Source of the DNA: Mytilus edulis | Lineage: Eukaryota | Assembly: GCF_963676685.1 (NCBI RefSeq) | Contig: NC_092357.1 | Span: 61,566,001 to 61,630,000 of the forward strand | Direction of reading: 5' to 3' | DNA: 64,000 bases | Shown: piece after piece, positions 5,592 through 29,140 of the stretch | Position numbering within the stretch: the first letter of the stretch is position 1 | Layout of the letters: every line of letters starts with the position of its first letter | Notes under the pieces: generated by a model | The model's database searches: none | The model's input: the letters and a program-made list of their open reading frames with translations, nothing else | Told to the model about the DNA's origin: nothing | Position numbers and translations under genes: made by a program

Positions 5592-5684
5592 CTGCGATTA
5601 TTATACTATCTTCTGCAACTTCTATAGATTTATCTATTGGACTCTTATGACAAGTTTGTATATGAAGTGTTTTTTCTGTTTTAT
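5592..5684 (-). CDS. Linker exon 3 (93 nt, phase 1-1)
   Basis: ttttgtag|...|gtatta. Encodes (D)KTEKTLHIQTCHKSPIDKSIEVAEDSIIIA. Paralogous to the exons at 8946 and 11248. Confidence 0.75.
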
Positions 5685-5904
5685 CTACAAAATATACGAA
5701 TACGTCTTGTTTGTTTAATTCTTAATGAATATTATCAAACTTTGTAAGGCTGTCAAGATAGTTTTCAACTGCAACACATATTTGTCATGATACATAAGAC
5801 ATACATATGGTATTAATTCAATATGTTCGTGTTGCTACAATGAACATATGACTATTTTGTTTTAAAAACGACACTTAAATATTAATCAAAACTAAGCTCA
5901 GGAA

Positions 5905-6360
5905 TATGGTATCTACTAAAAGACACAAGCTTCATATGCAGGCTCTGCTGGAATAATGCAACATACAAATTGAAAGTTGAGAATTTGGATTGTGATTGGA
6001 GAGATACGTTCAAAATAGCCACCAAACTTTAAAATATCTGAATTATTTGAACGTCAAAAACGGGTACATACGAAAATGATTCGAAAAAATATTCCTATGA
6101 ATCTCAATTGTAGTAAATTAATACTAAATTTCATTGCAGTAAAACAAATCTGAGTCATAAACATATGTTTTATCGGTGTTCCTAAAGACTATTTTGGGAA
6201 CATGAACATTGATTCGGTAACTTATTATCTTGTAATGAAATGTTACCCATATTCTTTTTTACTTCCAAGATGTACGCCAACACATAAGAAAGACTTGCAT
6301 TTATCTGTCTTATGCTTTATTTCAAATTTGATAAGATAAATGCATTCAACAAAGTCCTCG
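5905..6360 (-). mobile_element. Highly decayed Penelope-like RT 3' remnant
   Basis: Homologous to 7940-8400, which translates as ...PAYEAYISQ, the PLE RT C-terminal motif. Confidence 0.5.
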
Positions 6361-7379
6361 AATTATGAAGAATTCTTTTCCAACCGACGCAAATGACAGT
6401 CACTATCGTTCTATGTGATCTGAGATTGTGGAAATGATCATAAAATTTAGAATGGAAATGGAGAATGTGTCAAAGAAACAACAATCCGATCAAAGAGCGG
6501 CGGTGTGCTTCAGCTTGTCCCTAAACAAAAATATAAACTAGTTCGGGAATAATGGACGTCGTACTAAACTCCGAAATATACACAAGAACCTAAAATTAAA
6601 AATCATACAAGTCTAACAGAGGCTCCTTACATGGGACATGCACAAATATGCGGCTGGTTGAAACATGTTTTTTGAGATCTCAATCACCCCCTATACATCT
6701 AGCCTATGTAGAAAAAAACTAAACACAGAAAAATTAGACTGTTGGTTTTTGTTTTTCGTTATTTTTTTTGTACACAAATTAGGCCGTCAGTTTTCTCCTT
6801 TGAATTGTTTAACATTTGTTATTTCGAACCTTTTATAGCTGACTATGCGGTATTGGCTTTGCTCATTGTTGAAGGCCGTATAATGACCTATAGTTTTTTT
6901 TTATTTCTGTGACAATCGGTTACTTGTGATGAGCTCTCTGATTGGCACATCTGCTTTTTTTTTTTAACAAGATGTCTAACTGTTGTTTTAAGATTGAGAA
7001 CTTCGATACTTGCTCCGTTGGTTTTGTCATGCTTGTGCTTGTTAAAAAAAAGACGAAATTCATGGTAGGAAATGTAATCTCACAAATATCGCATCAAGTT
7101 AAAGATAATATCCTTTATGCAAACGCCATTGCAATTTTACTGCGAAGAATTGGCAAGCTGCAATTGGGAAACTGGAATTGACTCTTTAATAGCTAAGTTA
7201 TGATCTAAACCTACACATATTGACAATAATTTGATGTAAGTCAAGGTATGAGGTTGACTTAATTTTATCTGTTCTATACTTTATTTTCAGTTCGATGGAA
7301 TAGTTCCGTTCAACATAGTCTTAAACTTATTATAATTAGGTGAGAGGACATCGTCCTTATGGCGGTAGTTTAAGTTTAA

Positions 7380-8400
7380 TAATAATAATAGCTTCGTTTG
7401 ATTTTTATTGACAGGCTCTTGTAAGAAGTCAGTTTACTTCAAGACGGTGCGCTTTGATATTCCAATTGTCTGTTGAAAAAAATCCGTCTTCCTAAGGTAA
7501 CAAAAATATTGTCAATCAAGAAATGAATAATCTCGATATTGTCAGTTTCAGAGAGCTTTTTGTTTGAAGAAGAGTAATTTTCCACAAAGTGCGATTTTTC
7601 CTCTCTAACACAAGAGATACGTATATATTTACTTTGGTCATTGATTTCTATCAAACAAACGACCAATTGTTTCAATTTGTTTTTCAGGTTTGTATGAATA
7701 ATACTTTGGTAATGTGTAGAACGGTCAAATGTTTGATACTTATGGAAAATATTGTAAGGGGAAATGCATTTTCATGTTTGTGGTTGCTACAATGTATATA
7801 TGGCCTTTGGTTCAAATAAAACTGAATATTAATTTAAAATAACCCTAACAAAAATCGTAGATCATACCAGGTGCCCCGGAATGGTGAGTAGACCCTCTAT
7901 AAAGGCTTTCAAAATATGAAATATAAGCTCTAGCGTATCGTATCTACTGGGAGATATAAGCTTCATATGCAGGCTCTGATGGTTGGAACAATGCAACATA
8001 CAAATTGAAAGTTAAGAATTGGTAGTTCGATTGGAGAGATGCGTTCAAAATAGCCACCAAACTTTGAAATATCTTTGTAACGAAACTCGTAAGTTTATTA
8101 GAAATGCTAGCTACTTTGTATGCTAAGAAACTCATGCATGAAGTCAGCATCTTTTGAATAAGGGAAAAAGGTGGAATGAAAAGGAGCACGGAGGGTTCCC
8201 ATTGAAATGCAAATTGCTTGTTGAAAGAGTCTTTCTCAAAAGGTAATTAATAAGTCGAATGTTATCGTTGAAGTATATTTTAGTTTATTTCATTGCAGTT
8301 AAAAAAAAATGTGAGTCATAAACACGTACCTTGGGTGTTATTAAGCCACATTCTTGTTTTATCATGTGTTTCTATAAAACATTTAGGAAACTTGAGGTTG
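7380..8400 (-). mobile_element. Decayed Penelope-like RT remnants flanking a duplicated intronic segment
   Basis: ORF 7439-7675 contains FLIDNIFVTLG. ORF 7944-8189 contains PSEPAYEAYISQ. Confidence 0.55.
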
Positions 8401-8945
8401 AATGGTTATTAAGGCATGTAAACAGAATAGAAAGGATCGGAAACCTGATTGATTAACTTCCAGTGATGGCTATTATCTTATGCTAATTCGTAATGAAATA
8501 GTATATGAAATTTGTCTGTAGTACTGGATATTATATGAACGTTACTCCTGCCAAGTATTTTTTCATTTGAAACAAAGACAAATACTTCACAATATTACAA
8601 AGAAAAATAGGTGTAAACAATGGTGGTAGTACATGTAAGGGGTAAACAAGTCAAATGTAATGATTCAACTGCTAGAGGAAAAAAACAAACGCCTGGAATT
8701 AATTAGAATCCTCATCTGATTTTGTCAACCCTAAAGTCTTTAGTTACATAATTACTTTATAGTAAGCGTGTGATTGGTGATATCATTGACAAGTTCTTTA
8801 TAATTTAGACAGAGTTGTGTTTGATATCTAATAAAACGTAGACTGCTTTTTAAATAAAATGCTGACAATCGTTTACTGATAATCTTCCTCTGTGCTTTAA
8901 CATATGTTTTTATAACGTAGCATGTATCATATTTGTCAAATGTAC

Positions 8946-9023
8946 CTGATACTATTGTACTCTCATCTTCGATTTCATCAGATGTAGCCAATTCACGGAT
9001 ATAAATAGTTTCTTCTGTTTTGT
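8946..9023 (-). CDS. Linker exon 2 (78 nt, phase 1-1)
   Basis: ttttgaag|...|gtacat. Encodes (D)KTEETIYIRELATSDEIEDESTIVS. Differs from its paralogs by an in-frame 15-nt length difference. Confidence 0.75.
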
Positions 9024-9199
9024 CTTCAAAATATATGAAAAAAAATTACACGTATTAGTCTTAATGAATTATCAAACATAGTAATGTATACATTTTATTC
9101 AACTGCGACGAACATTTTTCCTGAAATATAAGAGATATCTCAAATAAAATTATTAATCTTTTTTGGCTACATCTTTTATTTCTAAGTAGCCTCACGAAC

Positions 9200-10850
9200 T
9201 GATGATTTACGAGAAGAAGTTGAACCGTACAGTTTGTCAGAATAGGTCAAAACTCTCAGGTCTCTGATAAAACGTCGCATTCATAAGTTGAAAAAACTGT
9301 GTGAAAGATCGGATAAAGTCCGTTTTAAGAGACAAAGAGGCCGGGAAATATCTAGCATCTCTTCATGATAAGTGTTTGTTGTTGTTCCTGCGGACAAAGT
9401 TTCAAATAATATTGTCTTTGTATGTAAATCGTATTACTACGAATGTCTTGTAAAATAATTCGGTATGAATGAGCACTCAGGTAACCATCCCTCAAACAAA
9501 AATATATCAATTGACAAGGATGAGATTTTACCAAATCATAAGCTCATCATGGCTTCAATGGGCATTACATTGAACACAAAATTGGAGGACTTACCTTGTT
9601 TGTATTTGATACCTAAACTTCATAAAGTTCCGTACAAACAACGATATATTGCTGGCTCATCTTCATGTTCCTGTGAAGAATTGTCCAATAGATTGACTAG
9701 AATTCTATCCGCAGTGAAAGAGGGTCTTCCGACATACTGTGAAACTGTTTACTCGCGTATGGTATTAACCATATGTGGATTCTTAAAAATTCTAAAGAAC
9801 TTCTAGATAATTTTAAATCTCGGTCTTTTTCATTTTGTTTTTCTGAAATTAGTTCTATCAAAACTTTTTATTTTTTAACCCTGTATACCACAATTCCCCA
9901 TATGAAATTGAAAAATCGACTGAAAGAAATAATCCACAATGCCTTTCAACATAAAAATGGTAGCATACGCTATAAATTTATTACTTTGGGATATCATAAG
10001 GCGTATTTTGTTTATAGTGAAAAACAAAGAGGTAAAACTATACAGAAAAACAAGTGATCAGTATGCTGGAGTTCATTATCGACAACATATTTTTTGAGTT
10101 TGGAGGTAGACTTTTTCAACAAATTGTCGGCATCCCTATGGCAACAAACTGTGCGCCTCTCCTTGCCGACCTTTTCTTATTTTCATATGAATCGGAGTTC
10201 CTTCAGGTACTAGTCAAAAACAAGAGGATCAAAGAAGCCAGATTATTTAATTTCACTTTCAGATATTGATGATGATGATGTTCTTTCCATAAATAATCCG
10301 AACTTTTTTGATTGGGTTCTATTAATATATCCCCCAGAACTAGAAATTAAAGAAACAACAGACACGGCTTCCTCCGCCTCATATTTAGACTTATATCTCG
10401 AATTTGACTTACACAGTCATCTCAATACCAGAATCTATGACAAACGAGACGATTTTAATTTTGAAATCATAAATTTCCCCCACCTTATTAGCAATAGACC
10501 AACTTCACCTGCATATGGGATATACATTTCCCAACTTATTCGATATTCAAGAACTTGCAGCTCCTACTCAAACTTTGTAAAACGTTATCAGTGTCTGATA
10601 AGAAAGTTGTTGAACTAATGGCATATCAAAGAACGTCTCGTCTTTTTTCTAAAAAAGTTCATCGGAAGGTACTAAGAGCTTGTTGATAAATATTCCATAT
10701 CAACTTCACAGATAATTCATGATGGTCTTGATGTATTATATTCTGCGTAGTGACGTTGATTATCATCTTAACAACATGTTATATAGTTTTTTCCATTCGT
10801 CTTTGTTCTAATATTAATATTACTTTTACTATTGGAATGTTTTCTGTGTA
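9200..10850 (+). mobile_element. Degenerate Penelope-like retroelement RT (second subfamily)
   Basis: Frameshifted ORFs 9465-10269 with LPCLYLIPKLHKVPYKQRYIAGS, MWILKNSKELL, TLYTTIPH and GIPMATNCAPLLADLFLFSYE. Downstream sequence reads YDKRDDFNF and AYGIYISQLIRY. Confidence 0.88.
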
Positions 10851-11247
10851 GAAAGGTCAAATGTGTAATACTTATGGAACATGTTGAAAGGGGAAATGCA
10901 TTTAATCGTTTTCTGTAAATGATATTTGGAATTCACCACCACCCAAACCTGATTCACGGTATCTGTGATGAGTTAATTCCCTAAATGGATAGTTTCACAA
11001 TGCATTACACCCGGACTTCCGTGCTGATATAATTGATTCTTATTATTTCGAAAGAGGTATGTATGGTCTGTGTTTGAATGCTATTTGTAGGATTCATATC
11101 TGTCAATAAATTATTGATAATCTACATTAGTCTCTGAATATATATATATTACTACACAAAGGCAAATAGTTTTCATTAATTAGCAGGTAAATATTTAACT
11201 GAATAATACCTTACAGTGTAATTTACATTCAAGTTCGTCAAATGTAC

Positions 11248-11340
11248 CTGAAACAACTGTACTGTCTTCTTCACCTTCAACAAATTTATCTGTTGGACTC
11301 ATATGACAAGTGTCCATATGAAGTGTTTCTTCTGTTTTGT
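11248..11340 (-). CDS. Linker exon 1 (93 nt, phase 1-1)
   Basis: atttgtag|...|gtacat. Encodes (D)KTEETLHMDTCHMSPTDKFVEGEEDSTVVS. Confidence 0.78.
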
Positions 11341-12153
11341 CTACAAATATATGATTACTTCTTGTTTGAATAATTCTCAATGGATATTATAAGATTTGTA
11401 AGGCTGTGTACATTATTTTTAACTGCAACACATATTCGTTATGATACATTAGATATGTCTCAGGTATTGTTTTAAATATGTTTGTGGTTGCTACAATGTA
11501 TATATGGTCTTTTGGTTCAAATAAAACTGAATATTAATAAAAAATAACTCTAACAAAAATCGTAGATCATACCTGGCCCCGGAATGGTGAGTAGACCCTC
11601 TATAAAGGCTTTCACCATATGAAATATAAGCTCTGGCGTTACGTATCTACTGTGAGATATAAGCTGCCATGGAAGAGACACTAATTTAAATCAGTGCCAA
11701 CCATTCATATATTTTATTTAGTTAGACAGTGTTTTTGATATCAAATATACATATTGGCCAACATGCTTTGAGTGCATCGTGAATATATAGGTATGTATGT
11801 TCCAGTAATATTGTGCGTGTGCAACGTTCAATTTGGGGTTTCCTTTCAACATTTTAACTTTGGAATAACTTCTTTTTGACTATACTCATAATTTTAAAAA
11901 CTGATCCGTTAATGGAGCACAGCTAGCTGAGTGTGCTCCATCTCTGTTGAGAATTACTTGAAGGAGCAGAAGATTGCAAATATTTCCGAATGATTCCGAT
12001 AAAATATGTTCCACAATTTTGAATTTGGATAGCAGCAAAAACTCATGTAAGAGGAGAATCACATAAGGTGTCTTTCTGCATAATGTGATTCTAATATGCA
12101 AGATCGTATCCAAGGACCTGCAAGCATGCAGTATTTTTATAGTTCTATTTATG

Positions 12154-12299
12154 CATAGGCGGATTTAAAGGAGGCCTGGCCCCCCTTTTCTGGGAAAAAC
12201 CTGGTTGATTATAGAGATTCACTGAAACGTGACTAGAGCGGGCCCCATCTTTGGCAGTCATTGGGCCCCCACTCATAAAAAATTCTAGATCCGCCACTG
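12154..12299. mobile_element. MITE with imperfect TIRs and a 5-bp TSD (hAT5-like)
   Basis: Ends cataggcggatt ... gatccgccactg, flanked by ttatg on both sides (12149-12153, 12300-12304). Confidence 0.65.
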
Positions 12300-13339
12300 T
12301 TATGTTCCTTTGAGGTGTTAATTTCTTTTTAGGGTTTGTCCACTTAAAATTGTTTACTTGTTAAGGATCTTCATGGTATCGTTAGTAAAAGATTTTCGCA
12401 ATTGTTCCTATGAAGACCTATTATTGTTCTAAGTAGCAATAATATATGAATTATGTCAGATACCAATACATATGCACAAAACTCCTACAAACTGATAAAA
12501 AACTTCTAGATACGATCAGGACTAACGGACAAAAGGTTAAAAAATATACTTGCTTACATTATCAGTAGTTATGTATAAGCGAATTATCATTTAAACTCAG
12601 GACTCATTAGTAGACATCACATTTTGTCTATGATTTTAAAAAGTATTAAGCAACCACCTAACGTTATAGTGCTAGTAGCATGACCATTGTTTGGTTATTT
12701 GTGCTTTACTTTATTTGGCTTCGGGACAAAAAAATGTTTAGTTAAGTTGTTAATAAAATGCTTTTATCTCTCCTTAAATACTTACATCGAATTGATGCTA
12801 CTTCAACAACTCATTGTGCTGACAGTTTTGACCATCTTACAGCCGATAATGTGCAATTGTGAGTTGTGTGTGAAATTTTTTTTCACAAATAAAATTGAGA
12901 AAGGAAATAGGGAATGTGTCAAAGAATGTATTTGCATAGCAATTTAATAATACACTTATACAAAAAGCTCAATCGGATAATTATCCAGTGATATCTTTTG
13001 TTATAGAGGCCTATCATGAACATTTACCCATCATAACCACCTCTGATCACCGATGATATTACAATCATGCCAAACTACATTGATCAGAAGTCTTGAAGAA
13101 GACACATTTCTTTTTTTTTATATCATATATACGTTTTCTAATTAAAACATATTTAGTTGTGGTAAAAACATTCAGTTTCTAGCAAGTTGTTGTCCCTTCA
13201 TGCACACATTAGTTATATATGCTGAGTGTCCCTCTTTTGAAATAAGAAAATTGATGTCTATTTTACAGACTAGACACAATGAACATGATGAAGTCTAAGT
13301 TTTATAAAATGTTAGGATGAACCATATAATTTTAAAAAG

Positions 13340-14262
13340 TTGAGAACAGTTAAAATACTTAACGGCTTCGCTTAGTGCAGCTGGATACACCCGCAGAGGT
13401 CCAACCATGAATATTGTGTCAAAAATTGACACAATATTCAAGCTTAATACAGGTCTGAATTTAGATTGTGATTAAATATTTGACAAATTACAGGTGTCTG
13501 AATAAATGTAGTCAAAGAAGTTGAAATTGGTCATATGAATTGAATTTATATATTCAATTAAATATATCTTACTGTTGCGCAATACTTAGTAAATTTGTTG
13601 TCAGACTATAAACAAAAAAAAAATCAATTTCTTCTCAATGTAATATTTGAAATTTATGAAAATCAATAGGGAGATTACATCAATAGCTATACATAATTCA
13701 CCAAAGTTTCACGAGAACTGCTGAAAGCATTTTTGAGTTATTGTCCAAAAACTGGAAAATGGCCCCTCTTTTACTGAATAAAACCCCCAGAACTCATAAA
13801 TGTACTATCTATAATTTATAAAAGTCTATACGGAGCTTACATTAATAGATATAAACCATTCAACAAAGTTTCACGAGAACTACTGAAAGCATTTTTAGTA
13901 ATTGTCATAAAAGTGGAAAATTCACCCATTTTTATGAATAAAACCCTGTAACTCTGAAACGTAAAATTTCAAATTAAAAAAAATCAATATATATAAACAA
14001 TTAACCAAAATTTCTTGCAAATTGGTGAAATAATTACTTGAGTTATTGTCGGAAAACTGGAAACTCTCCCTTCTTGAACGAAAAACACCCGAAATCTCGG
14101 AAACGTTAAAGCTGAAATTAATAAAAAAAACCCGAAAGGGAGCTCATGTCAAAAGTTTCATGTATATTTTAGTGCTTTTGAGTTAATGTCCGACATGTTG
14201 ACGACGAACGGACAGACGATCTATAATAAACCATAACACGTCCGTAAACGGCGTATAAAAAT
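13340..14262. mobile_element. Non-autonomous Helentron/HINE-like element with central ~165-bp tandem repeats
   Basis: About 3 diverged copies of caaagtttcacgagaactgctgaaagcatttttgagttattgtc, then a gacggacag-type microsatellite and a short hairpin before ggcgtataaaa. Boundaries approximate. Confidence 0.5.
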
Positions 14263-14264
14263 TT

Positions 14265-14850
14265 GCCGTGGGGAATTTTTGATGAATTATAGAAGAGGGA
14301 TGGTAGGGTCACCCTATCCCAACTTTGGACCTCAATCGACAATATTTCGTAACTTTACCTACCTGGGTCTGTTGGTCCAGGCCACCTTAACCAATTGCCT
14401 ATATTTTGTACCTAGTGTGGATAAAAGCTTTGCCATAGGGACTTTTTTATGATTTGAAGTTTGGAGGTGATGGGGTCACCCTACCCCAACTTTGGATTTC
14501 AATTAAAAAATCTCCGTTACTCTACCCACCTGAGTCTTTAGGTCCAGGCAATCTAAGGCAATTGCCTTTCATGTGTTTCTCGTGTGGACATAAACTTTGC
14601 CGTAGGGACTTTTAGAACCCCAACTTTAAGCTTCAATTAAAAAATTTCCGTAACTTTCGTCCAGGCAAACTAAGACAACTGCCTATCAATTGTACCTAGT
14701 GTGTACAAAAGCCACTTTGTCGTAGGGACTTTTTTTATGAATTAAAGTTAGAAGGTGGTGGGGTCACCCTATTCCAGCTTTGGACGTCAATTAAAAAAAT
14801 CCGTTACCTTACCCACGTGGGCCGTTGGTTCCAAGCAACCTTAGGCGTTA
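14265..14850. repeat. Satellite-like tandem array, ~165-170 bp unit, ~3.5 diverged copies
   Basis: ggggtcaccctaccccaactttgga recurs at ~14306, ~14472 and ~14760, with a partial copy at ~14617. Confidence 0.75.
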
Positions 14851-16932
14851 CGATTAATCAAAAGCTTTAAATCAATTCATATTTCGTTCCATTTGTGTGT
14901 CACCCTTACATAAATCCCTATTCCTATCGAAATTTATTTAAAAGATTTACCGGTTTCTAGACATAATTTGGAATAAAAAATAAAAAGTAGTTTATAGTCA
15001 GAAAGCTGCGTGTAGTTATTAGCTTTTACTTCAATTTGATATATTATATGACAACAAAATGCTGTATTTGTCGTTCCTTGACTAATCTGTTTTATTTTAT
15101 TTTATTTTTAAACTAATATATAAAGCTTGATAATTTAATTGTATAAAATATGAACTATCATGTATATTAATTGTTTCATTATTATAGAGACTACAAACCC
15201 ATCTTTGATAAAAAAATAACACTTAAAAGAGAAGGGATTAGCTAAAGGGAACTTTTAAAATCGTATAAGAGATACCCGGCTGTCAATTTTTTTTCTAGAT
15301 AAATGAATTACTAATCAAATTTGTATTTGAGAGAATAAATTACATTTCGTCTTCCTTCTGAAAACGAGTGTCGATTGATAGATTTCAAAGAACGTTTCTG
15401 TTTAATGTAAGTCTTTATTTTTAGGCATTGTTCGCTGGCTTATTGTTCACTAACTTGAGTCTGATATTATGTATCATAACGAAATCGGAGATCCAAAACG
15501 ATAGACAACGGTATACCATAATTCGTTCAGTCTAAAACAGAGTAGTATAAAAAAGATAAAGCGGAAATCTTGAACCATTATTTTTTCTGATGTTTAGTTG
15601 AGAGTAATAAAGTGGTACTTTTCAACGAAACTGTTAATCTGACAGAGGTAAAGTAATTGCAGGAAATCTAAAAAAGAATTCTTCAATTATAACAGGGACC
15701 CCTGTAATTGAGGGGGTGAACATGGGATGACTCCCACTTCCCTCCTCATGCCTATTTTGTGGTGAGGCATGAATCATTCCCTTTTCACTACCCTCGTCAT
15801 CTGGGTCCCGTCCGAATCTCCATTCCCTCCAACATACCTCCAACTCATTCCCATGCATGCTTCGATTCCAGAATTGTGTCCACCAAGTGGCAGATCTAGA
15901 TCTGGGGGGGGGGGGGGGGGGGGGGTTAGGGGTTAAAATTCCCCTTTTTTAGACGACAAATCATTTGGATGAAACATATATTTGGAACTCCTCCCCTTTA
16001 CTCCTGCCCCTGCACCCGTTCATATTTGTATCATATACTGCACTGTCATATATCTTATAGTATCTGTATGTATCATAAGAAATACTGCGACTTTTTTTAA
16101 GCAAAATGCCAAAAATAATAAAATGAATGAAATGGATACAACCTCGAGGGTACAACATAATCTAAATGAAACCATATAAGGGAAATCTTGATTATTAATT
16201 AAAGACATTTTCATATTTATTAATAACCACTTATAAAGCTAGTATTTAGGTAGACTGAACTAACGTGTAACAAACCTTCGATCGGCCAGATTGTCTCAAA
16301 ATATACAGACTGGTGTAATCAATGGTGAAGTGGTAATTAGAAAAATGTAAATATCATAATTATGATAAATTAAATGACATGATAATTATAAAATTTAAGA
16401 GTTCATTTCTTTCTAATCAAAATTTTGTAAACGTTGTGTGGCGTTTGTTGCTGTTTTCTAAACGCTACAAAATTAGAAACAAATACATCGTTTAATATGT
16501 GTTTACTGACCCTGTGTGAACTTCCAATAATGCATGCACATGTTGTTGGTAAACAGACTTTTTACAAACGTAGAAACAAATACATCGTTTAATCAAGGTA
16601 GAATTAGAAACAAATGTAGTGTTTGTTCTAACAAACGACGAACGACAAACTATAGTTCTCCTCTTATATTTAATGCGTTTCCCTCGGTTTTAGTTTGTTA
16701 TCCCGATTTTGTTTTTTGTCCATGGATTTATGAGTTTTGAACAGCGGTATACTACTGTTGCTTTTATAGACGCATTTTTAGCGAGTGCACTATAGTTTTT
16801 CGTCGGCATACAGTTCTGGAGATTCATTCTAAAACCATTGAATTGCAATTGACCTTAATTATATAATTTTTTAATATAAATTCCCTGATTGATAATTAAT
16901 GATTGAATACTTAATGATTTAATATAGATAAC

Positions 16933-17025
16933 CTGATGGAGAACTTAGTCGATTCTCAGATAGGGGTGTTTGGAATCGTCTGCTGCAGGTATCGGAAATT
17001 TAGGAAATTTGACCTACTTGGTCAA
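16933..17025 (-). other. Candidate 93-nt phase 1-1 exon carrying an in-frame TAA
   Basis: atattcag|...CAG|gttatc. Same length and phase as the linker exons. Reads (V)DQVGQIS*ISDTCSRRFQTPLSENRLSSPS. Confidence 0.3.
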
Positions 17026-17270
17026 CTGAATATTTCGTTTCTTTATATTGTTGTTAAAAGAAAGGAAAAAAGGAATACCTATTATAGCCTTTAGTCACTT
17101 ATAATTTCGTTATACATTTGATGTCCATTTAAATGCGCTTTTGTTTAAATAAAGCAATGAATTGTGTCTTTTGGACACCATCCAAATTTTATCACATGAC
17201 CCTTTTGCTTTACACTATAAAAGATATTTTTGCAATATACATATGCATTGTGTGTAAAGTTTTTAAACTA

Positions 17271-17420
17271 GAGGGACGAAAGATACCAAAGGGACAGTTA
17301 AACACATAAATCGAAAATAAACTGACAACGACATGGCTAAAAATGAAAAAGACAAACAGACAAACAATAGTACACATGACACAACATAGAAAAACTAAGA
17401 ATAAACAACACTTTCACCAA
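17271..17420 (+). repeat. Dispersed repeat (agagggacgaaagataccaaagggacag family), truncated copy
   Basis: Near-identical to 40021-40150. Further copies at ~42270 and, inverted, at ~1280-1390, ~4240-4450 and ~50915-51025. Confidence 0.75.
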
Positions 17421-18239
17421 AAATATAAGATTTTAAATTAACTGGTTTTAAAAAAAAAGTAGTAAAATAACAAATATAACAAATTTCGAGGAATATTACA
17501 AAAAACCACATCAAACGTACGGACAACAATTGTCATATTCCTAACTTAGGACGAGCATTTTTTTTTATGTAGAAATGGTGGATTAAACCTAGTGTTATGG
17601 CTAACTAAACTTCTCATATGTATTAAGTCGAAAGAAATGCCATTATTTTGACAACGATGTGTGAACAAAACAAACAGACATATTAGGTAGAATTGTCAAA
17701 AGTAGGAGAATAACAATCAACTTTATCATATAATCTTAATCACTTTAAAACAAACAAATATGTGAAAAAGAAACACAAAAAGACATATAGATTAAGCACA
17801 TTAGTAAAAATAAAGACAGAATGACAAAACAAAAACAACAAAATATAGCACAATAACAAAATGACGGGATGTATAAACACATATCTACGTTATATGTAAC
17901 AAAGACACACAAATCGCTCAGAGACAAAGCACATAAGCAAAAATGAAAGACAAGAAAAAAAAATACTCACATTTTCATGTTCAGTGAACAATTTTTAAAA
18001 AGGAATGAATACCATAATTTGAAATAAAACTGAAAAGGTTCATATCCTTATGATATGCCTTTGTAATTTGATGTTACTATAACTTCATGATAAACTGGCG
18101 CAAAGACCAACAAACTATTTTCTATAGGGATAAAACGTGCATTTCAGTCATTGTTTGAAATAATACATCGCATACTACGGTTTTTATGTTATACAAATTA
18201 ATTCCATATTAAAGATTTTTTTTATCGAAAAAGACTTAC

Positions 18240-18521
18240 CTTTGATGTCACGCCACACGTCTGTACTTGGTAAGCTTCGTACTGATTTCTTTATCACGGT
18301 ACAAATTGTTAAATGGATGAATTTATCTGCAGAATTTAATGATATGCTGCAATTTTGATATTCTGGAGAAACCAACTTTTCTTTAGGAGCTTTACCGTCG
18401 CTTGTAGAATATTGAATCATAAAATTCTCTGTTCGAAAAAAGGTCTGCGGTGGAATTGACCATGTTACCTGAACACTTCTCCCATTTGTGACTGCATTGA
18501 TATGCTGGGGAGGCATTGGTC
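18240..18521 (-). CDS. FN3 exon following SEA (282 nt, phase 1-1)
   Basis: tttttatag|...|gtaagt. Encodes PMPPQHINAVTNGRSVQVTWSIPPQTFFRTENFMIQYSTSDGKAPKEKLVSPEYQNCSISLNSADKFIHLTICTVIKKSVRSLPSTDVWRDIK, with the FN3 PP..V.W..P..Y pattern. Confidence 0.85.
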
Positions 18522-18651
18522 CTATAAAAAAACATAACTGTGTTTTAACATAGTAAATTGGAGAAATAGAAACATTCTTTCGAAAATATCTTCTACACCT
18601 AATTGTGGCCTGATAAGGCAATAAGAACTTATTCAAAATATTCATACTCAC

Positions 18652-18803
18652 TGTTTAATGTTACGAATTCAAATCCTTTGGTTGATGTCTTAAACTTTCC
18701 GAAGACACCTCTCTTCAGGCGTTTTTCAAATGCTTCCCGTAATGCAGTTTCTTCATCATAACCCTCAGACGCAATGATGATTACAACATACACCGACCCA
18801 GGT
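18652..18803 (-). CDS. SEA domain, C-terminal half (152 nt, phase 2-1)
   Basis: tttttttaag|...|gtgagt. Encodes PGSVYVVIIIASEGYDEETALREAFEKRLKRGVFGKFKTSTKGFEFVTLN, resembling the perlecan SEA C-half (VFVELDVGSEG...TSPQGFQF). Not in the ORF track. Confidence 0.85.
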
Positions 18804-21516
18804 CTTAAAAAAATTTAATATGTTATGATTTATCTGTTGTTTTATCATTATACTGTACAGCAATAGTTTACTTTTCCCCTGGGATATTGCTTTTTTTATC
18901 TGCATTGTCGCATTTGTTGACAGTAACCATGTTAACATTGAGAACTTACCATGGTTGAAGCTAAATAGAGTATAAACAGATGTAGTATAAGTGGCAATGA
19001 AAATTATTCAAGTAGGCAAACCAAAGGTAAAATTTATATAGAATCGAGAAACGAGAAACACTTATGAACTAATCAACAAACGACAGTCACTCATCAACCA
19101 TAATTATGTAAACAAATGCAGTAGGTTCAAACGTTTAACAGGCGCCAACCTTCGCTCTAACATAAAGTAGTAGCACGGTGGGTAAGGTTGTCCTGTAAGA
19201 GAACGTTATGTGCTGATGGTTCGGTTCCCACTGGTGCTTGTGGGTCCTGATTCTGTGCTGTTGGGTTTGTTTACATTGTATCAGAATGGTGATAAAACAA
19301 CAGTTACGTGCTTAATTTTTCTCTGATACGTAAGTACCATGCAAATAATTAATACTACAACAATTTTTTATTGCAAATGTCGTGTAACTTCGCCATACAA
19401 AAACATTGTCCTGATGACGTGCTGGTAATTAGGAAAACGGTCCTGGGTCTGTACTCCTATGTCCTGGTACTGTGCCTTTACAATTTAGTTAAAAGTGGTA
19501 AATATTCAATATCATTGATGCTTAACTGTTATTGACTAATTAGCTGTTATCTGTTTTCTTAAAATTGACATTGTTGTGAATCTGTTTACGGTTATTGGAA
19601 AAAAAATAACCCCTAATTTTGTAATTTACTGTTTTCTCATTCATGATGATTAAAAACGCTGTTATCGGTTATCAATATTTGAAATTATTTGTAATCTTAT
19701 CTATTGACCTGTTAATGGAACATCTCTTTCCTCTTTGTAAAATAAAAAAAAATGTGTTTACGATTTTCGGGATTTCGATCCTTTTGCATGATCACCAAAA
19801 TACGTTGTAAAAAATACAATACCTATATAAAAAAATGATGTGGTATGTTTGTCAATGGACAAATTTCCAATTAGAAACCAAAGGCTGTATGTGTTAACAA
19901 CCATATGTCATTGTATGACCTTCTACAATGACCCGAAAAATCAAAATGTAAAACGTTTTGCATAAAAATCGAGAGCATAAATATAGAACAAAGGACTTTT
20001 TTCTAATAAAATAAAAAAATGGAAACGGAGATGTGTCAGAGACAACAACATGGCAAAACAACAGACAACAGTCGAAGGCCACCAATGACTTTTCAACACA
20101 GATAAAAAACATTGCCGCACCTGAGGCGGGCTTCAGTCGCCCCTCAAACATGTAATCAAGTTCACAGAAAATGGACGTCCTACTCAACTTTACAACATAT
20201 ACAGACATTTATTCAAATAGAAAACTCTCTAAAATCAGTTTTTCTCACATTACTACTCATTTATCAGAATCATAGTCTTAAAGAAATCACTCTAATGTTT
20301 TCTTTACTATACATTTTATACCCCCTCCCCTGATTCAATTTTTTAAATAATTTGAAAACAAGACTTTAATTATTGCCAGCCTACCCTATTTGCATATTTT
20401 CGGATATAAAATGCCTAGAACCTGTTTTAAACTGTTTTGATAACACATTGAAAGCATATCAGAATACTATAAAATTTATGTAATGTTTAGCAGTCAATCA
20501 TTACAACATTCAAGATTATATAAAGTATCCAATCCAGCCTCTGTCTCCAGTCCACATCTTACTGTATGCCTATTTGTCAATTAAAGAACACATTTTCTGC
20601 CTCAAATGGTCAATTTAGAATTCTTGTCACAACAGTATCATCTGTAACTATATTTCTGGCACAATTTAGCTAATATATATACTAGAAGTGTTCAAACAAA
20701 GCCATATTTGCAATAGTTGTATGTATGCAGATACCAGTCTGAGATATAAATTCACTTAAAATGTTGTAGAGATGACTGCTAACATCAAATTTTTGCATAA
20801 CTTTCAATCATAGTTATTGTTTTCTATATCAAGAACTTTAAAATCATAAAACCATAGCATTTACAAGTTAAATTATTTGTTTTATGACCCAAGGGGTAGG
20901 CTATTGTCTATGTTTTTTCCCCTGGGGCCTAAAATTTCCTAAATCATTCTGCTGTTTCTAGCAATTTGGAATATTTAGTACATATTCAGGAAAGAACACA
21001 CTATTGTAAGTTTTTCTTGAGATATTTTTGTTTTTCTACATTTGTAGCTTGTATTTATTATGCCGTGGTGACAAAAAAGCAGATTTAGGTGTTGCGGCTA
21101 ACTTTTTGGTTATCGAAAGGACACAAATACCCCATAAATAATATTCAGAAAGGATCTATGAGTTTCAATGACTGCGAAGAGTAAATATAAGCACTTTATA
21201 ACAATTTAACTTACAAATATGCAAATATTATGAATTAATTTTGTATCCAGGACTTTAAGTAAACTATGCATACTGTAAACTGTGAATTTATGCTGAGTCA
21301 TCATATTTAAGGCCCAGGATTCTAAAATTTTATATTTGATTTAATTTCTTTAAAATCTGTGAAATAAAGCAAATTCGGTTAATTTCTGAATGTTCCCCTG
21401 TTTCACCCTATATAGGTTGCATTTCTGTAAATATTGACAATGCAATTTCCCATTGAAACTCTTTTTACGGCTAAAACTGTACCACTTTTACTATGAAGTT
21501 TTGAAAAAAATCTTAT

Positions 21517-21897
21517 CTGGGTCGATGCCACTGCTGGTGGACGTTTCGTCCCCGAGGGTAACACCAGCCCAGTAGTCAACACTTCGGGTAACACCAGCCC
21601 AGTAGTCAACACTTCGGTGTTGACATGAATATCAATAATGTGGTCATTTTTTTTTTATAAATTTCCTGTTAACAAAAGTTTAAATTTTTCGAAAAACTAA
21701 GGATTTTCTTATTCCAGTCATAGATTTCCTTAGCCGTATTTGGCACAACTTATTGGAATTTTGGATCCTCAATGCTCTTCAACTTTGTTATTGTTTGGCT
21801 TTATAAATATTTTGATATGAGCGTCACTGATGAGTCTTATGTAGACGAAACGCGTGTCTGGCGTACTAAATTATAATCCTGGTACCTTTGATAACTA
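21517..21897 (+). mobile_element. Retrozyme-like (~380 bp) non-autonomous retroelement monomer containing a hammerhead ribozyme
   Basis: Contains a type I HHR core and an internal 30-bp tandem duplication (21557-21616). Imperfect aat(c)ttatc direct repeat at the flanks. A second partial copy lies at 24408-24537. Confidence 0.75.
21821..21864 (+). ncRNA. Minimal type I hammerhead ribozyme
   Basis: gcgtca-CTGATGA-gtc ttatgta gac-GAAA-c gcgt g-TC-tggcgt. Stem I gcgtca/tggcgt, stem II gtc/gac, minimal stem III, GUC cleavage site after 21858. Confidence 0.85.
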
Positions 21898-22039
21898 ATT
21901 ATCCTAGAATTGAAAGTTCATATGCACAACAATTTTTTTCAAAGGTGAAAATATAGGGCTGTGCGGCATATTTTCAACGTTTATATGTCCTGAACTTCTC
22001 AGAGTTTAAACTAACACTAATATTCTTAACTACCCCTAT

Positions 22040-23740
22040 CTTTAGTCTAAGCCCTCCGTAGATATCGAAGATGACATTATTCCCGGAAATCCTTTTGATG
22101 CAATCTTTATATATACAGAGTCTATGAATTTGTCAAGTTTTATGTACATTGAAATAACAGGGGAGTCTGTCCAAAGAAGAAGACAGGAAGTGTACCCAAA
22201 TTCCTTTTAGTCACGTTTGTATCTACCTTATAACTAACTGTCTGCTTATTATTATGCAGATTGAGAGATCAGTGGGCTATCACCATTGTTCTGTGCCATT
22301 TTTCCTGAAATTTTGACAATTTTTAGCTGAAAAGTGACAAACCAAGCCTTTCGTAGATATCGAAGATGACATTATTCTCGCAAATCCTTTTGATACAATC
22401 TTTATATATACTAAGTCTATGAGTTCGTCCAGTTTTTTGTACATCGAAAGACCCTCATTTAAGAGGTCTCAGATAGGTTTTCACTATATATTTTGAATAT
22501 CAAACTGGCACTTTGGATGCTCCGTAAACTTGAAAGACAGGAAGTGTACCAAAATTCCTTTTAGTCACGTTTGTATCTTCCTATTGACTGAATGTCTGCT
22601 TAGTATTAGGCAGATTGAGAGATCATGTGGCTATCACGATTGCCCTGCGCTCTTTGTCCTAAAATTTTAGCTGAAAAGTGACAATATAAGCACTCCATAG
22701 ATATCGAATCTGACATTATTCTGGGAAATCCTTCTAATACAACCTTTATATATACAGAGTCTATGATTTGCTTCAACTCTATGGACATTGAAAGACCAGG
22801 GGATTCTGACCCGCATTTAAACGGTCTCAGGTAGGTTTTCACTATATATTTTGAATATCCAAGTGGCACTTTGGGCGCTCCGTAAACTTGAAAGACAGGA
22901 AGTGTACCCAAATTCCTTTTAGTCACGTCTGTATCTACATATTGACTAAATGTCTTATTAATATTAGGCAGATTGAGAGATCATGAGGCTACCATTGCCC
23001 TGTGCCCTTTGTCCTAAAATTTTGATAATTTAGCTGAAAAGTGACAATATAAGCCCTCCATAGATATCGAATATGACAATACTCATTGAAATCCTTCTAA
23101 TACAATCTTTATATATACAGAGTCTATGATTTGCTTTAATTCTATGGACATTGAAAGACCAGGGGGGTCTAACCCTTAGAGCGGTCTCAGGTAGGTTTTT
23201 ATTATATATTTTGAATATCCAACTGGCACTTTGGGCGCTCCGTAAACTTAAAAGACAGGAAGTGTACCCAAATTCCTTAAAGTCACAGTTGTATCTACCT
23301 ATTGACCTAATGTCTGCCTAATATTAGGCAGATTGAAAGATCATGGGGCTATTACCATTGCCCTGTGCCCTTTGTCCTAAAATTTTGATAATTTAGCTGA
23401 AAAGTGACAATATAAGCCCTCCATAGATATCGAATATGACATTATTCTGAGAAATCCTTCTAATACAACCCTTATATATATAGAGTCTATGATTTACATA
23501 AATTTTATGAACATTAAAAAAACCAGGGGGGTCTCACCCTCATTAAAGCGGTCTCATGTAGGTTTTCACTACATATTTTGAATATCCAACTATCATTTTG
23601 GGCGCTCCGTAAACTTGAAAGACAGAAAGTGTACCCAAATTCGTTTTAGTCACGTGTGTATCTACCTATTGACTAAATGTCTGCTTAATATAAGGCAGAT
23701 TGAGAGATCATGGGGCTATCACCATTGCCCTGTGCCCTTT
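22040..23740. repeat. Tandem array, ~360-bp unit, ~5 copies
   Basis: aagccctcc(a/g)tagatatcgaa recurs at ~22049, 22343, 22688, 23051 and 23414. gacaggaagtgtacccaaattcc recurs with the same period. Confidence 0.9.
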
Positions 23741-23744
23741 TTGC

Positions 23745-24010
23745 AACTTGTATCAATCCACTTTGCGGGAAAGAGTGCTGCCTTTTAGCGGCGTTAGCTT
23801 GCTCTTTCCCGAAATCAACAATTTAGGGTGTCTTTTACCTGTAAAAGAAATATCTCTCTCTTAACACGGTTCAGCCATTTATCGTTCCCATCCGACGGAC
23901 TATCATCGTTTTCTCAAGACCATACTAGCAAATTGTGTTAAGGGAGAGCCCAAAATTCAGTTCCTGAAATTTTCATCCCGGATCGGGAATCGAACCAGGA
24001 ACCTTTGTGA
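23745..24010 (-). mobile_element. tRNA-derived SINE, 5'-truncated (possibly Meta-domain type)
   Basis: Minus-strand B-box GGTTCGATTCC near 23990, then a gatagtccgtcggatggg central block. The family assignment is from memory and uncertain. Confidence 0.5.
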
Positions 24011-24407
24011 TGCCTTGCAATGAGGATGCCCGCACTATATAAAAATAAAATAATAACGGACTACAGCAGTTGTTCGTTCAAATTAAATCCCTGACACAAA
24101 TGTTTGACTTAATTAAGTTAATTTAAGAACCTAACAAAATAGGGACATAGTCGCATTTGTTATCCTCGCTTATGATTATTCTGTTTCGATTGTTTTTGGA
24201 GAAAAACGAAAATAAAAGCGTACTGATATTGCTTGGGTCATAGGACGGACTTTTAAGTCATATACAAGACTTCCATTTACGACTGACTCAAAATACAAAT
24301 ATTCTAGTAAATTAAAAAAAAACAACCTTTAATTCCTAACTTGGTGAAAGTCAATTTTTTGGGTACCTGGGCTACACGAAATCCGGTATTAAACATATCT
24401 TCGGTTT

Positions 24408-24537
24408 CATAATGCTCTTCAACTTTGTACTTGTTTGGCTTTATAAATATTTTGATATGAGCATCACTGATAAGACTTATGAAGACGAAACGCGCGTCTG
24501 GCGTACTAAATTATAATCCTCGTACCTTTGATAACTA
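24408..24537 (+). mobile_element. Partial retrozyme copy with a degenerate hammerhead
   Basis: Aligns to 21768-21897. The core reads CTGATAA instead of CTGATGA, and stem II is gac/gac. Confidence 0.75.
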
Positions 24538-26059
24538 TCTGTAAGCGTTAAAAATACGATTTCTTTTAGACGCATGGATTTGGTACATAATTATGTTTAT
24601 TCATACAATATAACTCATGCAAGCCATATATTATTACAAGTTTCAAGTGGCCTTGGTCGGTATATTGGAATTTGAATTTTATTTGGTATCTGAGCTACAG
24701 GAACCAATATCAAACATTCCTTCCGTCTCTGAAAGTGATAAAAACTTAATTACTTGGGACCCCTGCAACAATTATATTATCATTTTTTTATTTAAAAAAT
24801 AATTCATGTAAGCTTAGGATTTGTTGAAACGTTCACATTCCTGCCGTGGGTCGTTATATTGGAATTTTACCCTGAACGTAAGCAAGGGATACAATTCCAA
24901 TATAATGACCATGTGAAAATTAAAATAAATCTATGGAATGAATTACTAGTATTTTGATTCTTATATGGTTCATATACTACAAATATACATCCTCTTGATT
25001 TGCATCCAATATTTTGAACTTGAAAAATTCAAAATAATATATTGACGTCAGTTTATTTTTAAGATACATTTGATACATTTACTGAAATCCTGTCGTACAA
25101 TATTTTTTAAATCATCTTTTAGCAGTTAATATATTTTCAACCACGCTCTTAATAGAGGTTTCTCAACATCTTAAGAACGGACGAAACTTTACAAATGTAT
25201 CGTTAAGGAGCAGTTATACATGTATTGTTATTATAAAATCCACGATAAATGTTTACCGATATTGCAGTGTTAAATGTGTTTAAATACAACAGTTAACAAT
25301 TGCATAGTCTTTTTGCAACCTTGCATTTTATATTTGTTAAACATCGGTGTTCCAATTTATTTTCTGTCGTTGAATGTTGCGTATTCTATGTTGCGTTTTG
25401 TTTGTTTACATGTTCGACTTATCCATTTAAAAAGAACATTGTCAGTTCGTAATGTAGTTAAAACAATCATCGCGTCTGGTTTACATTTCATGTGACTGAT
25501 TGTTGGATGTTTAACGTTCTGTTGTAAGTAGTTCATGCTTGTAACGACGACAATAGCGTTTGTAAAAGTCATAGAGTTTTGTGTATTCTTGTTGAAAGTA
25601 AGAGTGCTACAGAAACAACAAAACTGATAAATACATAGTTTTTAAAAGGAAAATTCTCTTTAAACTCCATTCCCAAAGTATACAGAAAAAAGTAGAAAAA
25701 TAAAAACCGAAGAAGGCATATACATTCCATCAAAACTCCACGAAAAAAAAAAACAAAAAAAAAACACAAAATAGTTATATATATATATTTCTCTAATTCT
25801 TCGTCAATATATCCCTTTCTGCACCCATTGTATAAAAAAATTTAATCAACGTGTGGTTCGTTTGATCTCAGTACTTCATTGGTAAAATCCGATTATGACG
25901 TCGAATGTTCTTGCTTTCCTCTGAAATTCTTATTGTGACGGTATGAAAAAAGGCGACCATGCCCAATGACGTCACATAGAAAGAACACATCTTTTTGCAG
26001 ATCATTGGAAAAGAAAGAATAAGTTTGCCTGCATAATGTTAGAAAATCATTAGAGAAAC

Positions 26060-26180
26060 AGATTCTACCACCAAATCTCGTGTAATATGATATTTATCCA
26101 CTCTCGACAGTTAAATTTTAAATATATAACCGTCGAGAGTGGATAAATATCGTATTTCACGAGATGCAGTGGTAGAATCT
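26060..26180. repeat. ~120-bp imperfect palindrome
   Basis: agattctaccacc...tatttatccactctcgac(agtta...taacc)gtcgagagtggataaata...gtggtagaatct. Confidence 0.85.
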
Positions 26181-27566
26181 ATATATAAATACTTCCATGA
26201 AAAAAACAAACAAACCCCCCCCCCCCCTAAATATATTACAGACAAATTTTAAAGTGTTAACTGTTTTTGACTTTTTTCAAATATTTATTTCAATGTTTCA
26301 TTTAAGGTCAAAAAGTGATCATTTGGATTTTAGAGTTGGGGCAATGAAGTCACCCCGGATCCTAGGATGTTTTTTTTTCAAATTAAAAACTACTGACGTT
26401 CACGCTTAGATTAGTTTTACCTCACGGTTGTGAAAAACCTTTTCCATTGATCTGATCCTTGATAAAAGTTAATCAGATTGCCTCTTCAATTCGAAAGTTC
26501 TATATTTACCCTTTTTCATATATGTACCAAAAAAATCGAAATCATGTTGTCATGTTTATCAAAATCTTTTGTATGATTGCTGATTCACTTAATAAGAAAT
26601 TACCATACATTTTGAGAGCATTTCAGGTTTATGATTGCATTTTTACTGTTTTAAACTTGTGTACAAGTATTACTCATGATCTAAATAGTATTATTCTAAA
26701 ATACATGAAATGTCAAATACACAAAGTCACATTGCCCTCGAAATTTACAAAATACTTTACCATACTCTTCGGAAATATTGTGTACAAATAATTAAAAACA
26801 AAACAGGTTTTCACGGGAATAAATCTTGTCAGTAAGAGGAGATTTATATCAAACGATACTTGGTAGAAGTTTAAGGCTCAAATAATTACAAACCTGCGTT
26901 GTAGAGTATTGATTCAAGCACTCAACCACTGTTGTACATAAACACTTATCAAAGATTCGCGACTCTACACAAGCTTTAAGAGTTACTAACACAGTTTGCG
27001 CATGTGCAATAAAGGCAACAGTAGTATACAGCTGTTCGAAATTCATCAATCGATTGAGAAAAAAACAAAAGCCGGTTACAAACTTAAACTGAGGGAAACT
27101 CATTAAATATAAGTATGAAGAGAAGAAATTGAAATGGGGAATGTATCAAAGAGACAACAACCTAACCAAAGAGCAGATAACAGCCTTAGACCAACAATTG
27201 GTTTGCAATACAGCGAGAAACTCCCGCACCCGGAGTCGTGCTTCAGCTGGTTCCCAAAAAATTAAACTAGTTCAGTGATAATAGACGTCATACTCCGAAA
27301 TATATACAAGAAACTAAGATTAAAAATCCTACAAGACTAACAAAGACCAGAGAATCCTGACTTGGGACAGGCGCAAAAAAATATGACGGGATGAAACATG
27401 TTTTTTTAAGATCTCAACCCGCCCTCTTTACCTCTAGCTAACATAGGAAAAACAAACCCACAATAATACGCACAGTAAAACTCAGTTTAAAAAAAGTCCG
27501 AGTCCGATTTCAGAATAGATAACAAAATAAACTAAACACACTGACATTGATACATTAATTAAGCTC

Positions 27567-28874
27567 TAGTGTTGTCAACGGTTTAACGGTTAACCGTTTG
27601 AACGACCGAATAACGAATACCAAAAATCAATAACCGATAAAACGATAAACTGCATGTGCTTGCGTGTTTAAGGGTTGCAGTTTTCTTTTCTTGATTAAAA
27701 GCCGAAGATTTTACAATTGATAATAATCGGCGGGGGTCTGATTTTTAAAAAGAAAGATTTTTTAATTGAAAATAATCGGCAGCCATTTGATAAAAAGCCG
27801 AATATTTTATAATTGGTGGTGAATTTTTAAAAGCCGAAGATGTTGAAAAGCCGTAGATGTTGAAAAGCCGAAGATTTTGAAAAGTCGAAGATTTTGAAAA
27901 GCCGTAGATTTTGAACAGCCGAGGATTTTGAAAAGCTGTAGATTTTGAAAAGCCGTAGATTTTGAACAGCCGAAGATTTTGAAAAGCCGTAGATTTTGAA
28001 AAGCCGAAGATTTGGAAGAGCAGAAGATTTTGATAAGCCGAAGATTTTGAAAAACTGAAGATTTTAGAACTTATAATAATCGGAAGGATTTTAATAGCCG
28101 AAGATTTATTTGTCGTGTGTATCCATGTATTTTAAAAGGAAAAATAATAATAATCGGGGGGTTCACTGTGGCTTTCCAAAGAAATCATTAAATAGTTATG
28201 TTTTCTGTAAAAATTGTCGTCGTGCTAATTGATTTCACAGATCAATTGTCCTGTATACTGATTGCTATTGTTAATCCAAACATATATATTTAATTAGAAC
28301 TGGTCTCTCAGCTCGGGGCAAGATCTTAAGTAAACATAATTAAACAGGCTATTATTTGAACTTGGAATTATTTTTAATTATTGAATTTGCATAATTTCTT
28401 GTACTTGATTTTTTTTTTATAAATTCCATGTTTATTCTGTACTACATGTATACTATTCTGTTTTGCACACAACACTTTCTATACAAAATATTTTGTATGG
28501 AAAGTGTTATGAACTGCTCAAAACATTATAATAACAAATAAACCTGAAATTTATTAAAAAATTCAAGAACAAGAAATTATGCAATTCCATTATTAAAAAT
28601 AATTCCATATTAAAAAAATAGCCAGGAATCTACACAGACAAGCCTTATAATGCCAAAGTACAAACTTCAATACATCGTATTATAAAAGCGTAAACGAATA
28701 ACTTGTATGGAAAGTTGTCATATTGACACAAACATCATATCTTGTTACACCTATGTATAGGGTACTATAGAAAAGGCCTTCAACCATCATCTAAAACTAC
28801 TGGTTAACCGGTTAATCGGTCGAACGATTATCCGAGTAACCGGTTAGTCAAAAGTGTACGATTTGACAACACTA
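27567..28874. mobile_element. Non-autonomous TIR element (hAT-like termini) with an internal minisatellite
   Basis: Perfect 12-bp TIR TAGTGTTGTCAA / TTGACAACACTA, subterminal aaccg/cggtt repeats, and taattaa on both sides (offset by 4 bp on the left). Confidence 0.75.
27828..28066. repeat. 17-bp minisatellite (aaaagccgaagattttg) x ~14
   Basis: Directly visible head-to-tail array with no spacers. Confidence 0.95.
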
Positions 28875-28980
28875 TAATTAACAAAGGACTCCTATCAGTT
28901 ACTGAAATGCCAGCTCCAGACCTCAATTAAACTGATTGAAAGACTATCTCTTCATCATATGAATGTATATATACACTTAC

Positions 28981-29140
28981 TTCAGATCAATGTCTTTAAT
29001 AACCAAATTTGGGTTTACATCTTTGATGATTTCTTTTACGGCATTACATGTATCAGTTTTGATGCCCTTGTGTGATGGGTGTCTTGAATCCGCACACTCC
29101 TTTTTAATGTTTGTTAAATGAACTTTAACTTTGTATGCAA
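28981..29140 (-). CDS. SEA domain, N-terminal half (160 nt, phase 1-2)
   Basis: ttttttcttctttag|...AA|gtaagt. Encodes AYKVKVHLTNIKKECADSRHPSHKGIKTDTCNAVKEIIKDVNPNLVIKDIDL(K). Its phase-2 end matches the phase-2 start at 18803, giving DIDLKPGSVYVV. Confidence 0.85.

Follow-up and report, generated by a model that had tools for sequence, protein, structure and literature searches.

A split SEA domain with an intact Gly-Ser motif in a Mytilus edulis FN3 gene that may continue into an nSTAND3-ankyrin exon

We analysed a 64,000-nucleotide stretch of the Mytilus edulis genome (assembly GCF_963676685.1, contig NC_092357.1, positions 61,566,001–61,630,000; hereafter the window, whose numbering is used for all coordinates). 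The whole 64-kb window is AT-rich animal DNA. On its minus strand, two exons about 10.2 kb apart very probably encode, when joined, one genuine SEA domain of the perlecan-like subfamily, with a Gly-Ser pair at the position where self-cleaving SEA domains are cut. SEA domains are textbook extracellular modules, self-cleaving and force-responsive. STAND NTPases power intracellular immune sensors, and downstream of the SEA exons on the same strand lies an exon for an nSTAND3 NTPase. We favour a model in which a minus-strand gene would comprise ten fibronectin type III (FN3) exons, the SEA domain and one further FN3 exon, the phase-1 donor of which, at 18240, most likely splices across 17.7 kb to the acceptor of the nSTAND3-ankyrin exon. 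The predicted product is FN3x10-SEA-FN3-nSTAND3-ANK(~60). Its SEA domain would cleave itself at G/S during folding, the halves would remain joined through their shared beta-sheet, and the domain would link the FN3 array to the NTPase module as a joint that can be broken. We assign this model, taken as a whole, a probability of roughly 0.45.

Two exons and the SEA family

Exon A (29140–28981, minus strand) enters in phase 1, leaves in phase 2 and corresponds to the N-terminal half of the domain, that is, the first strand, a helix and the second strand. Exon B (18803–18652, minus strand) enters in phase 2, leaves in phase 1 and carries the P-G-S-V-Y-V-V hairpin followed by the third strand, a helix and the fourth strand. 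Both have strong splice sites, and their phases match (1>2 and 2>1). A 95% pyrimidine tract with AG precedes exon A, which ends in the donor GAA/GTAAGT (the slash marks the exon boundary); exon B is preceded by tttttttaag and ends in ACA/GTGAGT. The first two bases of exon A complete a codon and two are spare at its 3' end, and exon B has one opening base and one spare closing base. The codon split between the exons, aa/a, is lysine, and the joined reading is ...VIKDIDL-K-PGSVYVVIIIASEG...GFEFVTLN, given in a second form across the junction as ...VIKDIDL-K-PGSVYVVIIIASEGYDEETALREAFEKRLKRGVFGKFKTSTKGFEFVTLN. The original prediction had proposed this two-exon join; the joined reading is as written there, and the phases were confirmed.

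Tested exon by exon, neither exon matched the Pfam SEA family, and sequence searches of the PDB with each half, and with profiles of exon-A-like and exon-B-like pieces, returned nothing significant; the lone suggestive row was a 57-residue ADGRF1 chain (E 1.2). Paralogs of exon B are present in this genome on contigs C608, C13, C2 and C6. A profile built from seven paralogous copies and scored against 1.84 billion representative proteins retrieved 46 proteins, Pfam-positive SEA proteins among them. These include P0047, an annotated perlecan of the sea spider Nymphon with a SEA domain and two LDLa modules (E 2.6e-10), P0073 from a snail, with a SEA domain and four LDLa modules, and the mussel proteins P0034 and P0035, with four to five SEA copies each. 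Their Pfam SEA scores were 35.2, 38.8, 49.3 and 38.5 bits, respectively (PF01390 cut-off, 26.4 bits). The region matched by exon B was continuous with the Pfam SEA hit, and in P0047 and P0073 it overlapped the end of that hit. The matched proteins are SEA-positive in Pfam and the two regions are continuous, so the subfamily can fairly be called perlecan-type.

The AlphaFold model of P0047 has the order strand-helix-strand-strand-helix-strand, with a predicted local distance difference test score (pLDDT) of 82–96 over residues 25–135. When this model was compared with the PDB using Foldseek, the six top matches were all SEA-containing structures (MUC16, TMPRSS6 and 1IVZ), at template modelling scores (TM-scores) of at most 0.67. 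A perlecan-type SEA domain had been proposed in the original prediction, and that reading held up both in the profile searches and in the match of a relative's model to solved SEA domains.

Against a hidden Markov model (HMM) of the family, built from 15 full SEA domains of database proteins, exon B scored 39.2 bits over positions 64–113. The N-terminal half was sought among all open, phase-compatible AG...GT exons of 100–240 bases lying between the preceding FN3 exon and exon B. Exon A was the sole one of these 80 candidates with strong splice signals and had the top family-profile score; it is the only credible candidate for the N-terminal half, though weakly similar to the family. A protein-language-model search with exon A placed SEA clusters at ranks 2 and 3 (scores 0.85 and 0.84), which we take as a lead only.

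The split of the domain recurs elsewhere in the genome. In the SEA domain on C608 an intron lies at the identical codon position and in the same phase as in the window gene, and in the C2 copy and three C6 copies the N-terminal half (HMM positions 5–60) and the C-terminal half (58–116) are on separate exons. At least five paralogous loci thus have a split SEA domain, the halves of which meet at HMM positions 59–63. In the window the phase-2 intron falls two codons before the G-S-V-Y-V hairpin, as is typical of the family. We assign exon A to the SEA domain on its length, its phases, the language-model lead and this paralog-like gene structure.

The 10.2-kb intron between the SEA exons also contains a minisatellite (27748–28131), which is open in three minus-strand frames and whose unit reads like SKSSAFQNLRLFKI.

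The cleavage motif

The codons GGG TCG at 18795–18800 (minus strand) encode a Gly-Ser pair at the position of the G/S scissile bond of self-cleaving SEA domains, with the spacing of canonical members. In the alignment, the window hairpin, L-K-P-G-S-V-Y-V-V, is spaced as in P0073 (E-G-S-V-V-V) and P0047 (P-G-S-V-I-A). An intact G/S motif had been predicted here, and it is indeed present in a hairpin of canonical length and spacing. Cleavage of SEA domains is brought about by conformational strain within the short hairpin, and the cleaved halves are held together by their shared sheet, so that force is needed to part them (PMC10556640). Judged from sequence, self-cleavage of the window domain at G/S is plausible.

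The nSTAND3-ankyrin exon and its link to the SEA exons

Downstream of the SEA domain is a further FN3 exon (18521–18240, minus strand, phase 1-1), with a weak Pfam fn3 match and 61% identity to the FN3 part of P0045, a Mytilus galloprovincialis model. Its donor, AAG/GTAAGT, agrees with the consensus at nine of nine positions. The giant last exon starts at 489 on the same strand in phase 1 and runs past the window start (1–489 within the window). Its open frame spans 2571 codons and encodes an nSTAND3 P-loop NTPase (GPSGVGKT, VFVIDD), followed by about 60 ankyrin repeats. The match to nSTAND3 (PF20720) scored 99.2 bits (E 2.5e-28), with both Walker A and Walker B present.

The acceptor AG of the NTPase exon is at 491–490, with ACTAAC upstream at 512–507, and in the paralog P0014 the acceptor has the same position and phase, after a similar intron end. 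Because the exon begins at 489 in phase 1, a coding exon closing in phase 1 is required upstream of it. No CARD, HEPN, linker or other coding exon was detected in 533–18240. The FN3 donor at 18240 fits the NTPase exon, since it is a perfect phase-1 donor with no other coding exon between the two. Joined to 489, it completes the codon g/at, aspartate, and the junction reads ...VWRDIK-D-HIKKQLKDWE.... In the paralogs, CARD, Death or HEPN domains stand at the place that the FN3-SEA array takes in the window gene. In favour of the link, P0045 joins SEA-FN3 to a module found ahead of nSTAND3 in the paralog P0010, and SEA domains of this subfamily stand beside STAND-type modules elsewhere (see below). 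We put the chance that the FN3-SEA gene is fused to the nSTAND3-ankyrin exon at about one half.

A scan of splice sites and phases placed ten FN3 exons upstream of exon A, between 30571 and 62886, all on the minus strand and all in phase 1-1. The first five are at 62886–62593, 61102–60809, 57657–57361, 55869–55576 and 54581–54288, and the remaining five at 52802–52509, 37497–37204, 32267–31974, 31717–31424 and 30849–30571. All four of the array frames tested gave Pfam fn3 matches, three of them above the curated cut-off. Three pairs of FN3 exons are near-identical (those beginning at 62886 and 61102, 57657 and 55869, and 54581 and 52802), a pattern suggesting that a two-exon unit was recently duplicated in tandem. 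All 14 exons of the locus are open, with good splice sites and consistent phases.

A hydrophobic, exon-like open frame (63757–63973, minus strand) precedes the first FN3 exon by 870 bases and contains an uncharged hydrophobic segment of 26 residues (63767–63844). It ends at base 63757 in a phase-1 donor, CTA/GTAAGT, that fits the first FN3 exon. Neither a 5' limit nor a start codon was found for it; no in-frame ATG precedes the segment, and only one lies within it. From its position and phase alone, it may be the exon for a membrane anchor or a signal sequence in the FN3 gene.

Repeats lie at 16533–17527, 2037–2806 and 9459–10615 (+) in the 17.7-kb gap that precedes the NTPase exon. Plus-strand frames in the gap resemble reverse-transcriptase fragments. 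Among the listed sequencing runs that contain this stretch, none is recorded as RNA. In three RNA sequencing (RNA-seq) runs, each sampled at 19–25% and aligned to 13150–19100, depth was high solely on repeats. One repeat family of the gap had very high depth on both strands, with reads running into unlike sequence.

Weighing the model against its alternatives

A number of observations weigh against the favoured model, bearing on the fusion, on cleavage and on exon A. With regard to the fusion, depth in the RNA-seq runs was zero over 18125–18920. Searches with the last exon, the FN3 frame and the start of the NTPase turned up no annotated or transcript-derived protein at least 90% identical to any part of the gene. 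Among annotated full-length relatives the closest, M. californianus LOC127699802 (P0058/P0080), has an N-terminal membrane helix and an FN3-SEA-FN3 arrangement, and no NTPase. P0045 has a methionine two residues past its FN3/linker junction, as in a merged model. The hydrophobic in-phase 5' exon suggests that the FN3-SEA part enters the secretory pathway; in a fused gene that includes this exon, all that follows the anchor would have to be cytosolic. With regard to cleavage, strain drives the reaction (PMC10556640) and in MUC16 the predicted cleavage site differed from the site used (PMC4456727), so the motif alone is no proof that the domain is cut. With regard to exon A, its score against the family HMM was 5.1 bits (positions 8–46; E 0.67 among the window's 1,092 open frames), and no paralog of it was found in the genome.

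The original prediction had placed the SEA domain and the NTPase in one protein. That claim stands in part: the phases and the conserved acceptor fit it, and the lack of RNA or annotation support, the hydrophobic N-terminal exon and the NTPase-less closest annotated relative count against it. It had also called for reads across the 28981>18803 junction; sought from the exon-B side in the three runs, where depth was zero, this splice was neither seen nor refuted.

A realistic possibility, though not a probable one, is that the locus holds two genes. One would encode an FN3x10-SEA-FN3 surface protein, secreted or anchored in the membrane, whose SEA domain has its usual extracellular role, and the other would be a neighbouring nSTAND3-ankyrin gene on the same strand or a 5'-truncated copy of one, the adjacency stemming from an old gene pair duplicated as a unit. 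The 26-residue hydrophobic segment in an exon in phase with the FN3 array fits this arrangement, as do the RefSeq models P0058 and P0080, which end without an NTPase. The hydrophobic exon and the N-terminus of P0058 have no significant similarity, and an Atlas search with the P0058 SEA region returned no usable match. The SEA hairpin of the window is of the canonical, extracellular type. At the paralogous C608 locus the N-terminal HEPN frame has a methionine where stand-alone HEPN-nSTAND3 proteins begin, and the methionine in P0045 can be read in the same sense. What speaks against two genes is that the NTPase exon, with the phase-1 acceptor of its family, needs an upstream coding exon, and that the FN3 exon alone was found in the 17.7 kb. 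That FN3 exon, moreover, terminates in a perfect donor and not in a stop, and the NTPase exon retains an intact frame of 2571 codons.

A fused gene in which the SEA domain does not cleave is, in our view, on the unlikely side. Here, as with the degenerate SEA copies of other mussel STAND proteins, the domain would serve as a folded spacer or a module for binding. In the copies nested within HEPN-nSTAND3 proteins, G-S is lost or the loop is two to four residues longer, and P0058, the closest FN3-SEA-FN3 relative, has no G-S at the site; the dependence of cleavage on hairpin strain and the MUC16 precedent point the same way. Set against this, the window copy retains G-S-V-Y-V at canonical spacing, and its closest relative, P0045, which is 76% identical over exon B, keeps G-S-V-Y-V-V as well.

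That exon A is not a real exon, or that the locus is an unexpressed or decaying copy with exon B as a SEA remnant, is very unlikely: the 5.1-bit score and uniqueness of exon A in the genome, the zero RNA depth on the exon-B side, the missing annotation and a two-chain prediction of the halves that gave no verdict (score 0.02, evidence neither way) are met by 14 of 14 open exons with good sites and consistent phases, by the right length, position and phases of exon A and its SEA-like feature profile, and by an exon structure equal to that of the paralogs.

SEA domains beside HEPN, nSTAND3 and CARD modules

The SEA subfamily of the favoured FN3-SEA-nSTAND3 gene was also found in other proteins with immune-type modules. 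In M. galloprovincialis XP_076105769.1 and M. coruscus CAC5426437.1, four to five SEA copies sit in a loop of a HEPN_DZIP3 domain, and a coiled coil and nSTAND3 come after it; the mussel proteins P0034 and P0035 are of this design. The same SEA-array HEPN-nSTAND3 arrangement is present in the genome analysed here on C6 at 36.60–36.63 Mb (36,597,606–36,627,605); most SEA copies of this design lack G-S. P0062 has a single SEA domain, with an intact P-G-S-L-V-V-V, after the N-terminal part of HEPN_DZIP3, and at a related locus on C2 (28,967,934–28,977,933; 50% identical, S-G-S-L-I-A-V) the SEA exon is followed, 1.1 kb downstream, by the C-terminal part of HEPN_DZIP3. If a SEA domain of the P0062 type cleaves, the HEPN domain would be held together by the SEA sheet alone.

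At the paralogous C608 locus, three FN3 exons precede a split SEA domain (R-G-S-F-Y-A-V), after which come one FN3 exon and, next, HEPN_DZIP3-like exons, all on one strand. The HEPN match is weak (18.8 bits), and the contig ends before any NTPase. In the limpet Patella vulgata, P0056, P0059 and P0061 have a coiled coil, a CARD and then a SEA-family domain, with G-C-V at the cleavage position in all three; the top Foldseek matches of the P0059 model were SEA structures. The cysteine of this G-C-V could act as the nucleophile. As read from these predicted architectures, the SEA subfamily appears in clearly intracellular contexts in mussels and limpets. No publication on SEA domains within STAND or NLR-like proteins came up in our literature searches.

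Comparison with known systems

The window SEA domain shares the C-terminal pattern S-x-G...G-x-x-G...GF-x-F with perlecan and SEA-LDLa proteins. The subfamily is held in common and the architecture is not: LDLa, laminin and Ig modules are absent from the window gene, only FN3 exons flank its SEA domain, and a STAND NTPase exon lies downstream. Human perlecan is not known to carry G-S at this position. Self-cleaving SEA domains, such as those of MUC1, the membrane serine proteases (matriptase, enteropeptidase, HAT) and adhesion G-protein-coupled receptors, carry G-S ahead of beta-branched or hydrophobic residues in the hairpin that links strands 2 and 3, and the window domain has the same motif at the same spacing. 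Those domains are extracellular and membrane-proximal, whereas a fusion to the NTPase could place the window domain in the cytosol.

With the FIIND (ZU5-UPA) of NLRP1 and CARD8 the likeness is in logic only, an autoproteolytic module through which a STAND-type immune protein could set an active fragment free. The folds are unrelated, and Pfam searches of the exon frames and of the 2560-residue last exon gave no match to ZU5 or UPA. The SEA domain would also lie N-terminal to the NTPase, whereas FIIND lies C-terminal, and no effector domain was identified in the part that would be released.

Among Mytilus proteins, the nSTAND3-ankyrin proteins with CARD, Death or HEPN N-termini (P0014, P0007) resemble the window gene in their NTPase region (57–72% identity), giant exon and phase-1 acceptor. 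The window gene differs in having an FN3 array and a SEA domain in place of the adaptor or effector domain, and in the unusual length of its ankyrin region, within the 2571-codon frame. The SEA-array HEPN-nSTAND3 proteins XP_076105769.1 and CAC5426437.1 have the same SEA subfamily and split-exon structure, N-terminal to nSTAND3; unlike the window gene, they carry their four or five SEA copies in the HEPN_DZIP3 loop, mostly without G-S, and have no FN3 exons.

Significance

The most far-reaching interpretation, which we consider improbable as it stands, is that molluscs recruited the normally extracellular self-cleaving SEA domain into cytosolic immune-type proteins of the STAND, HEPN and CARD kinds. 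The window copy, as one able to cleave, would then be a breakable joint, held non-covalently, between a possibly membrane-tethered FN3 stalk and the nSTAND3-ankyrin part, at which force or loss of the N-terminal portion would free the NTPase and activate it, in convergence with the FIIND tripwire of NLRP1 and CARD8. If the SEA domain and the STAND module are truly one protein, mussels would have a second, independent design of pre-cut immune sensor besides FIIND. Independently of the window gene, one SEA subfamily recurs beside HEPN, nSTAND3 and CARD modules in mussels and limpets.

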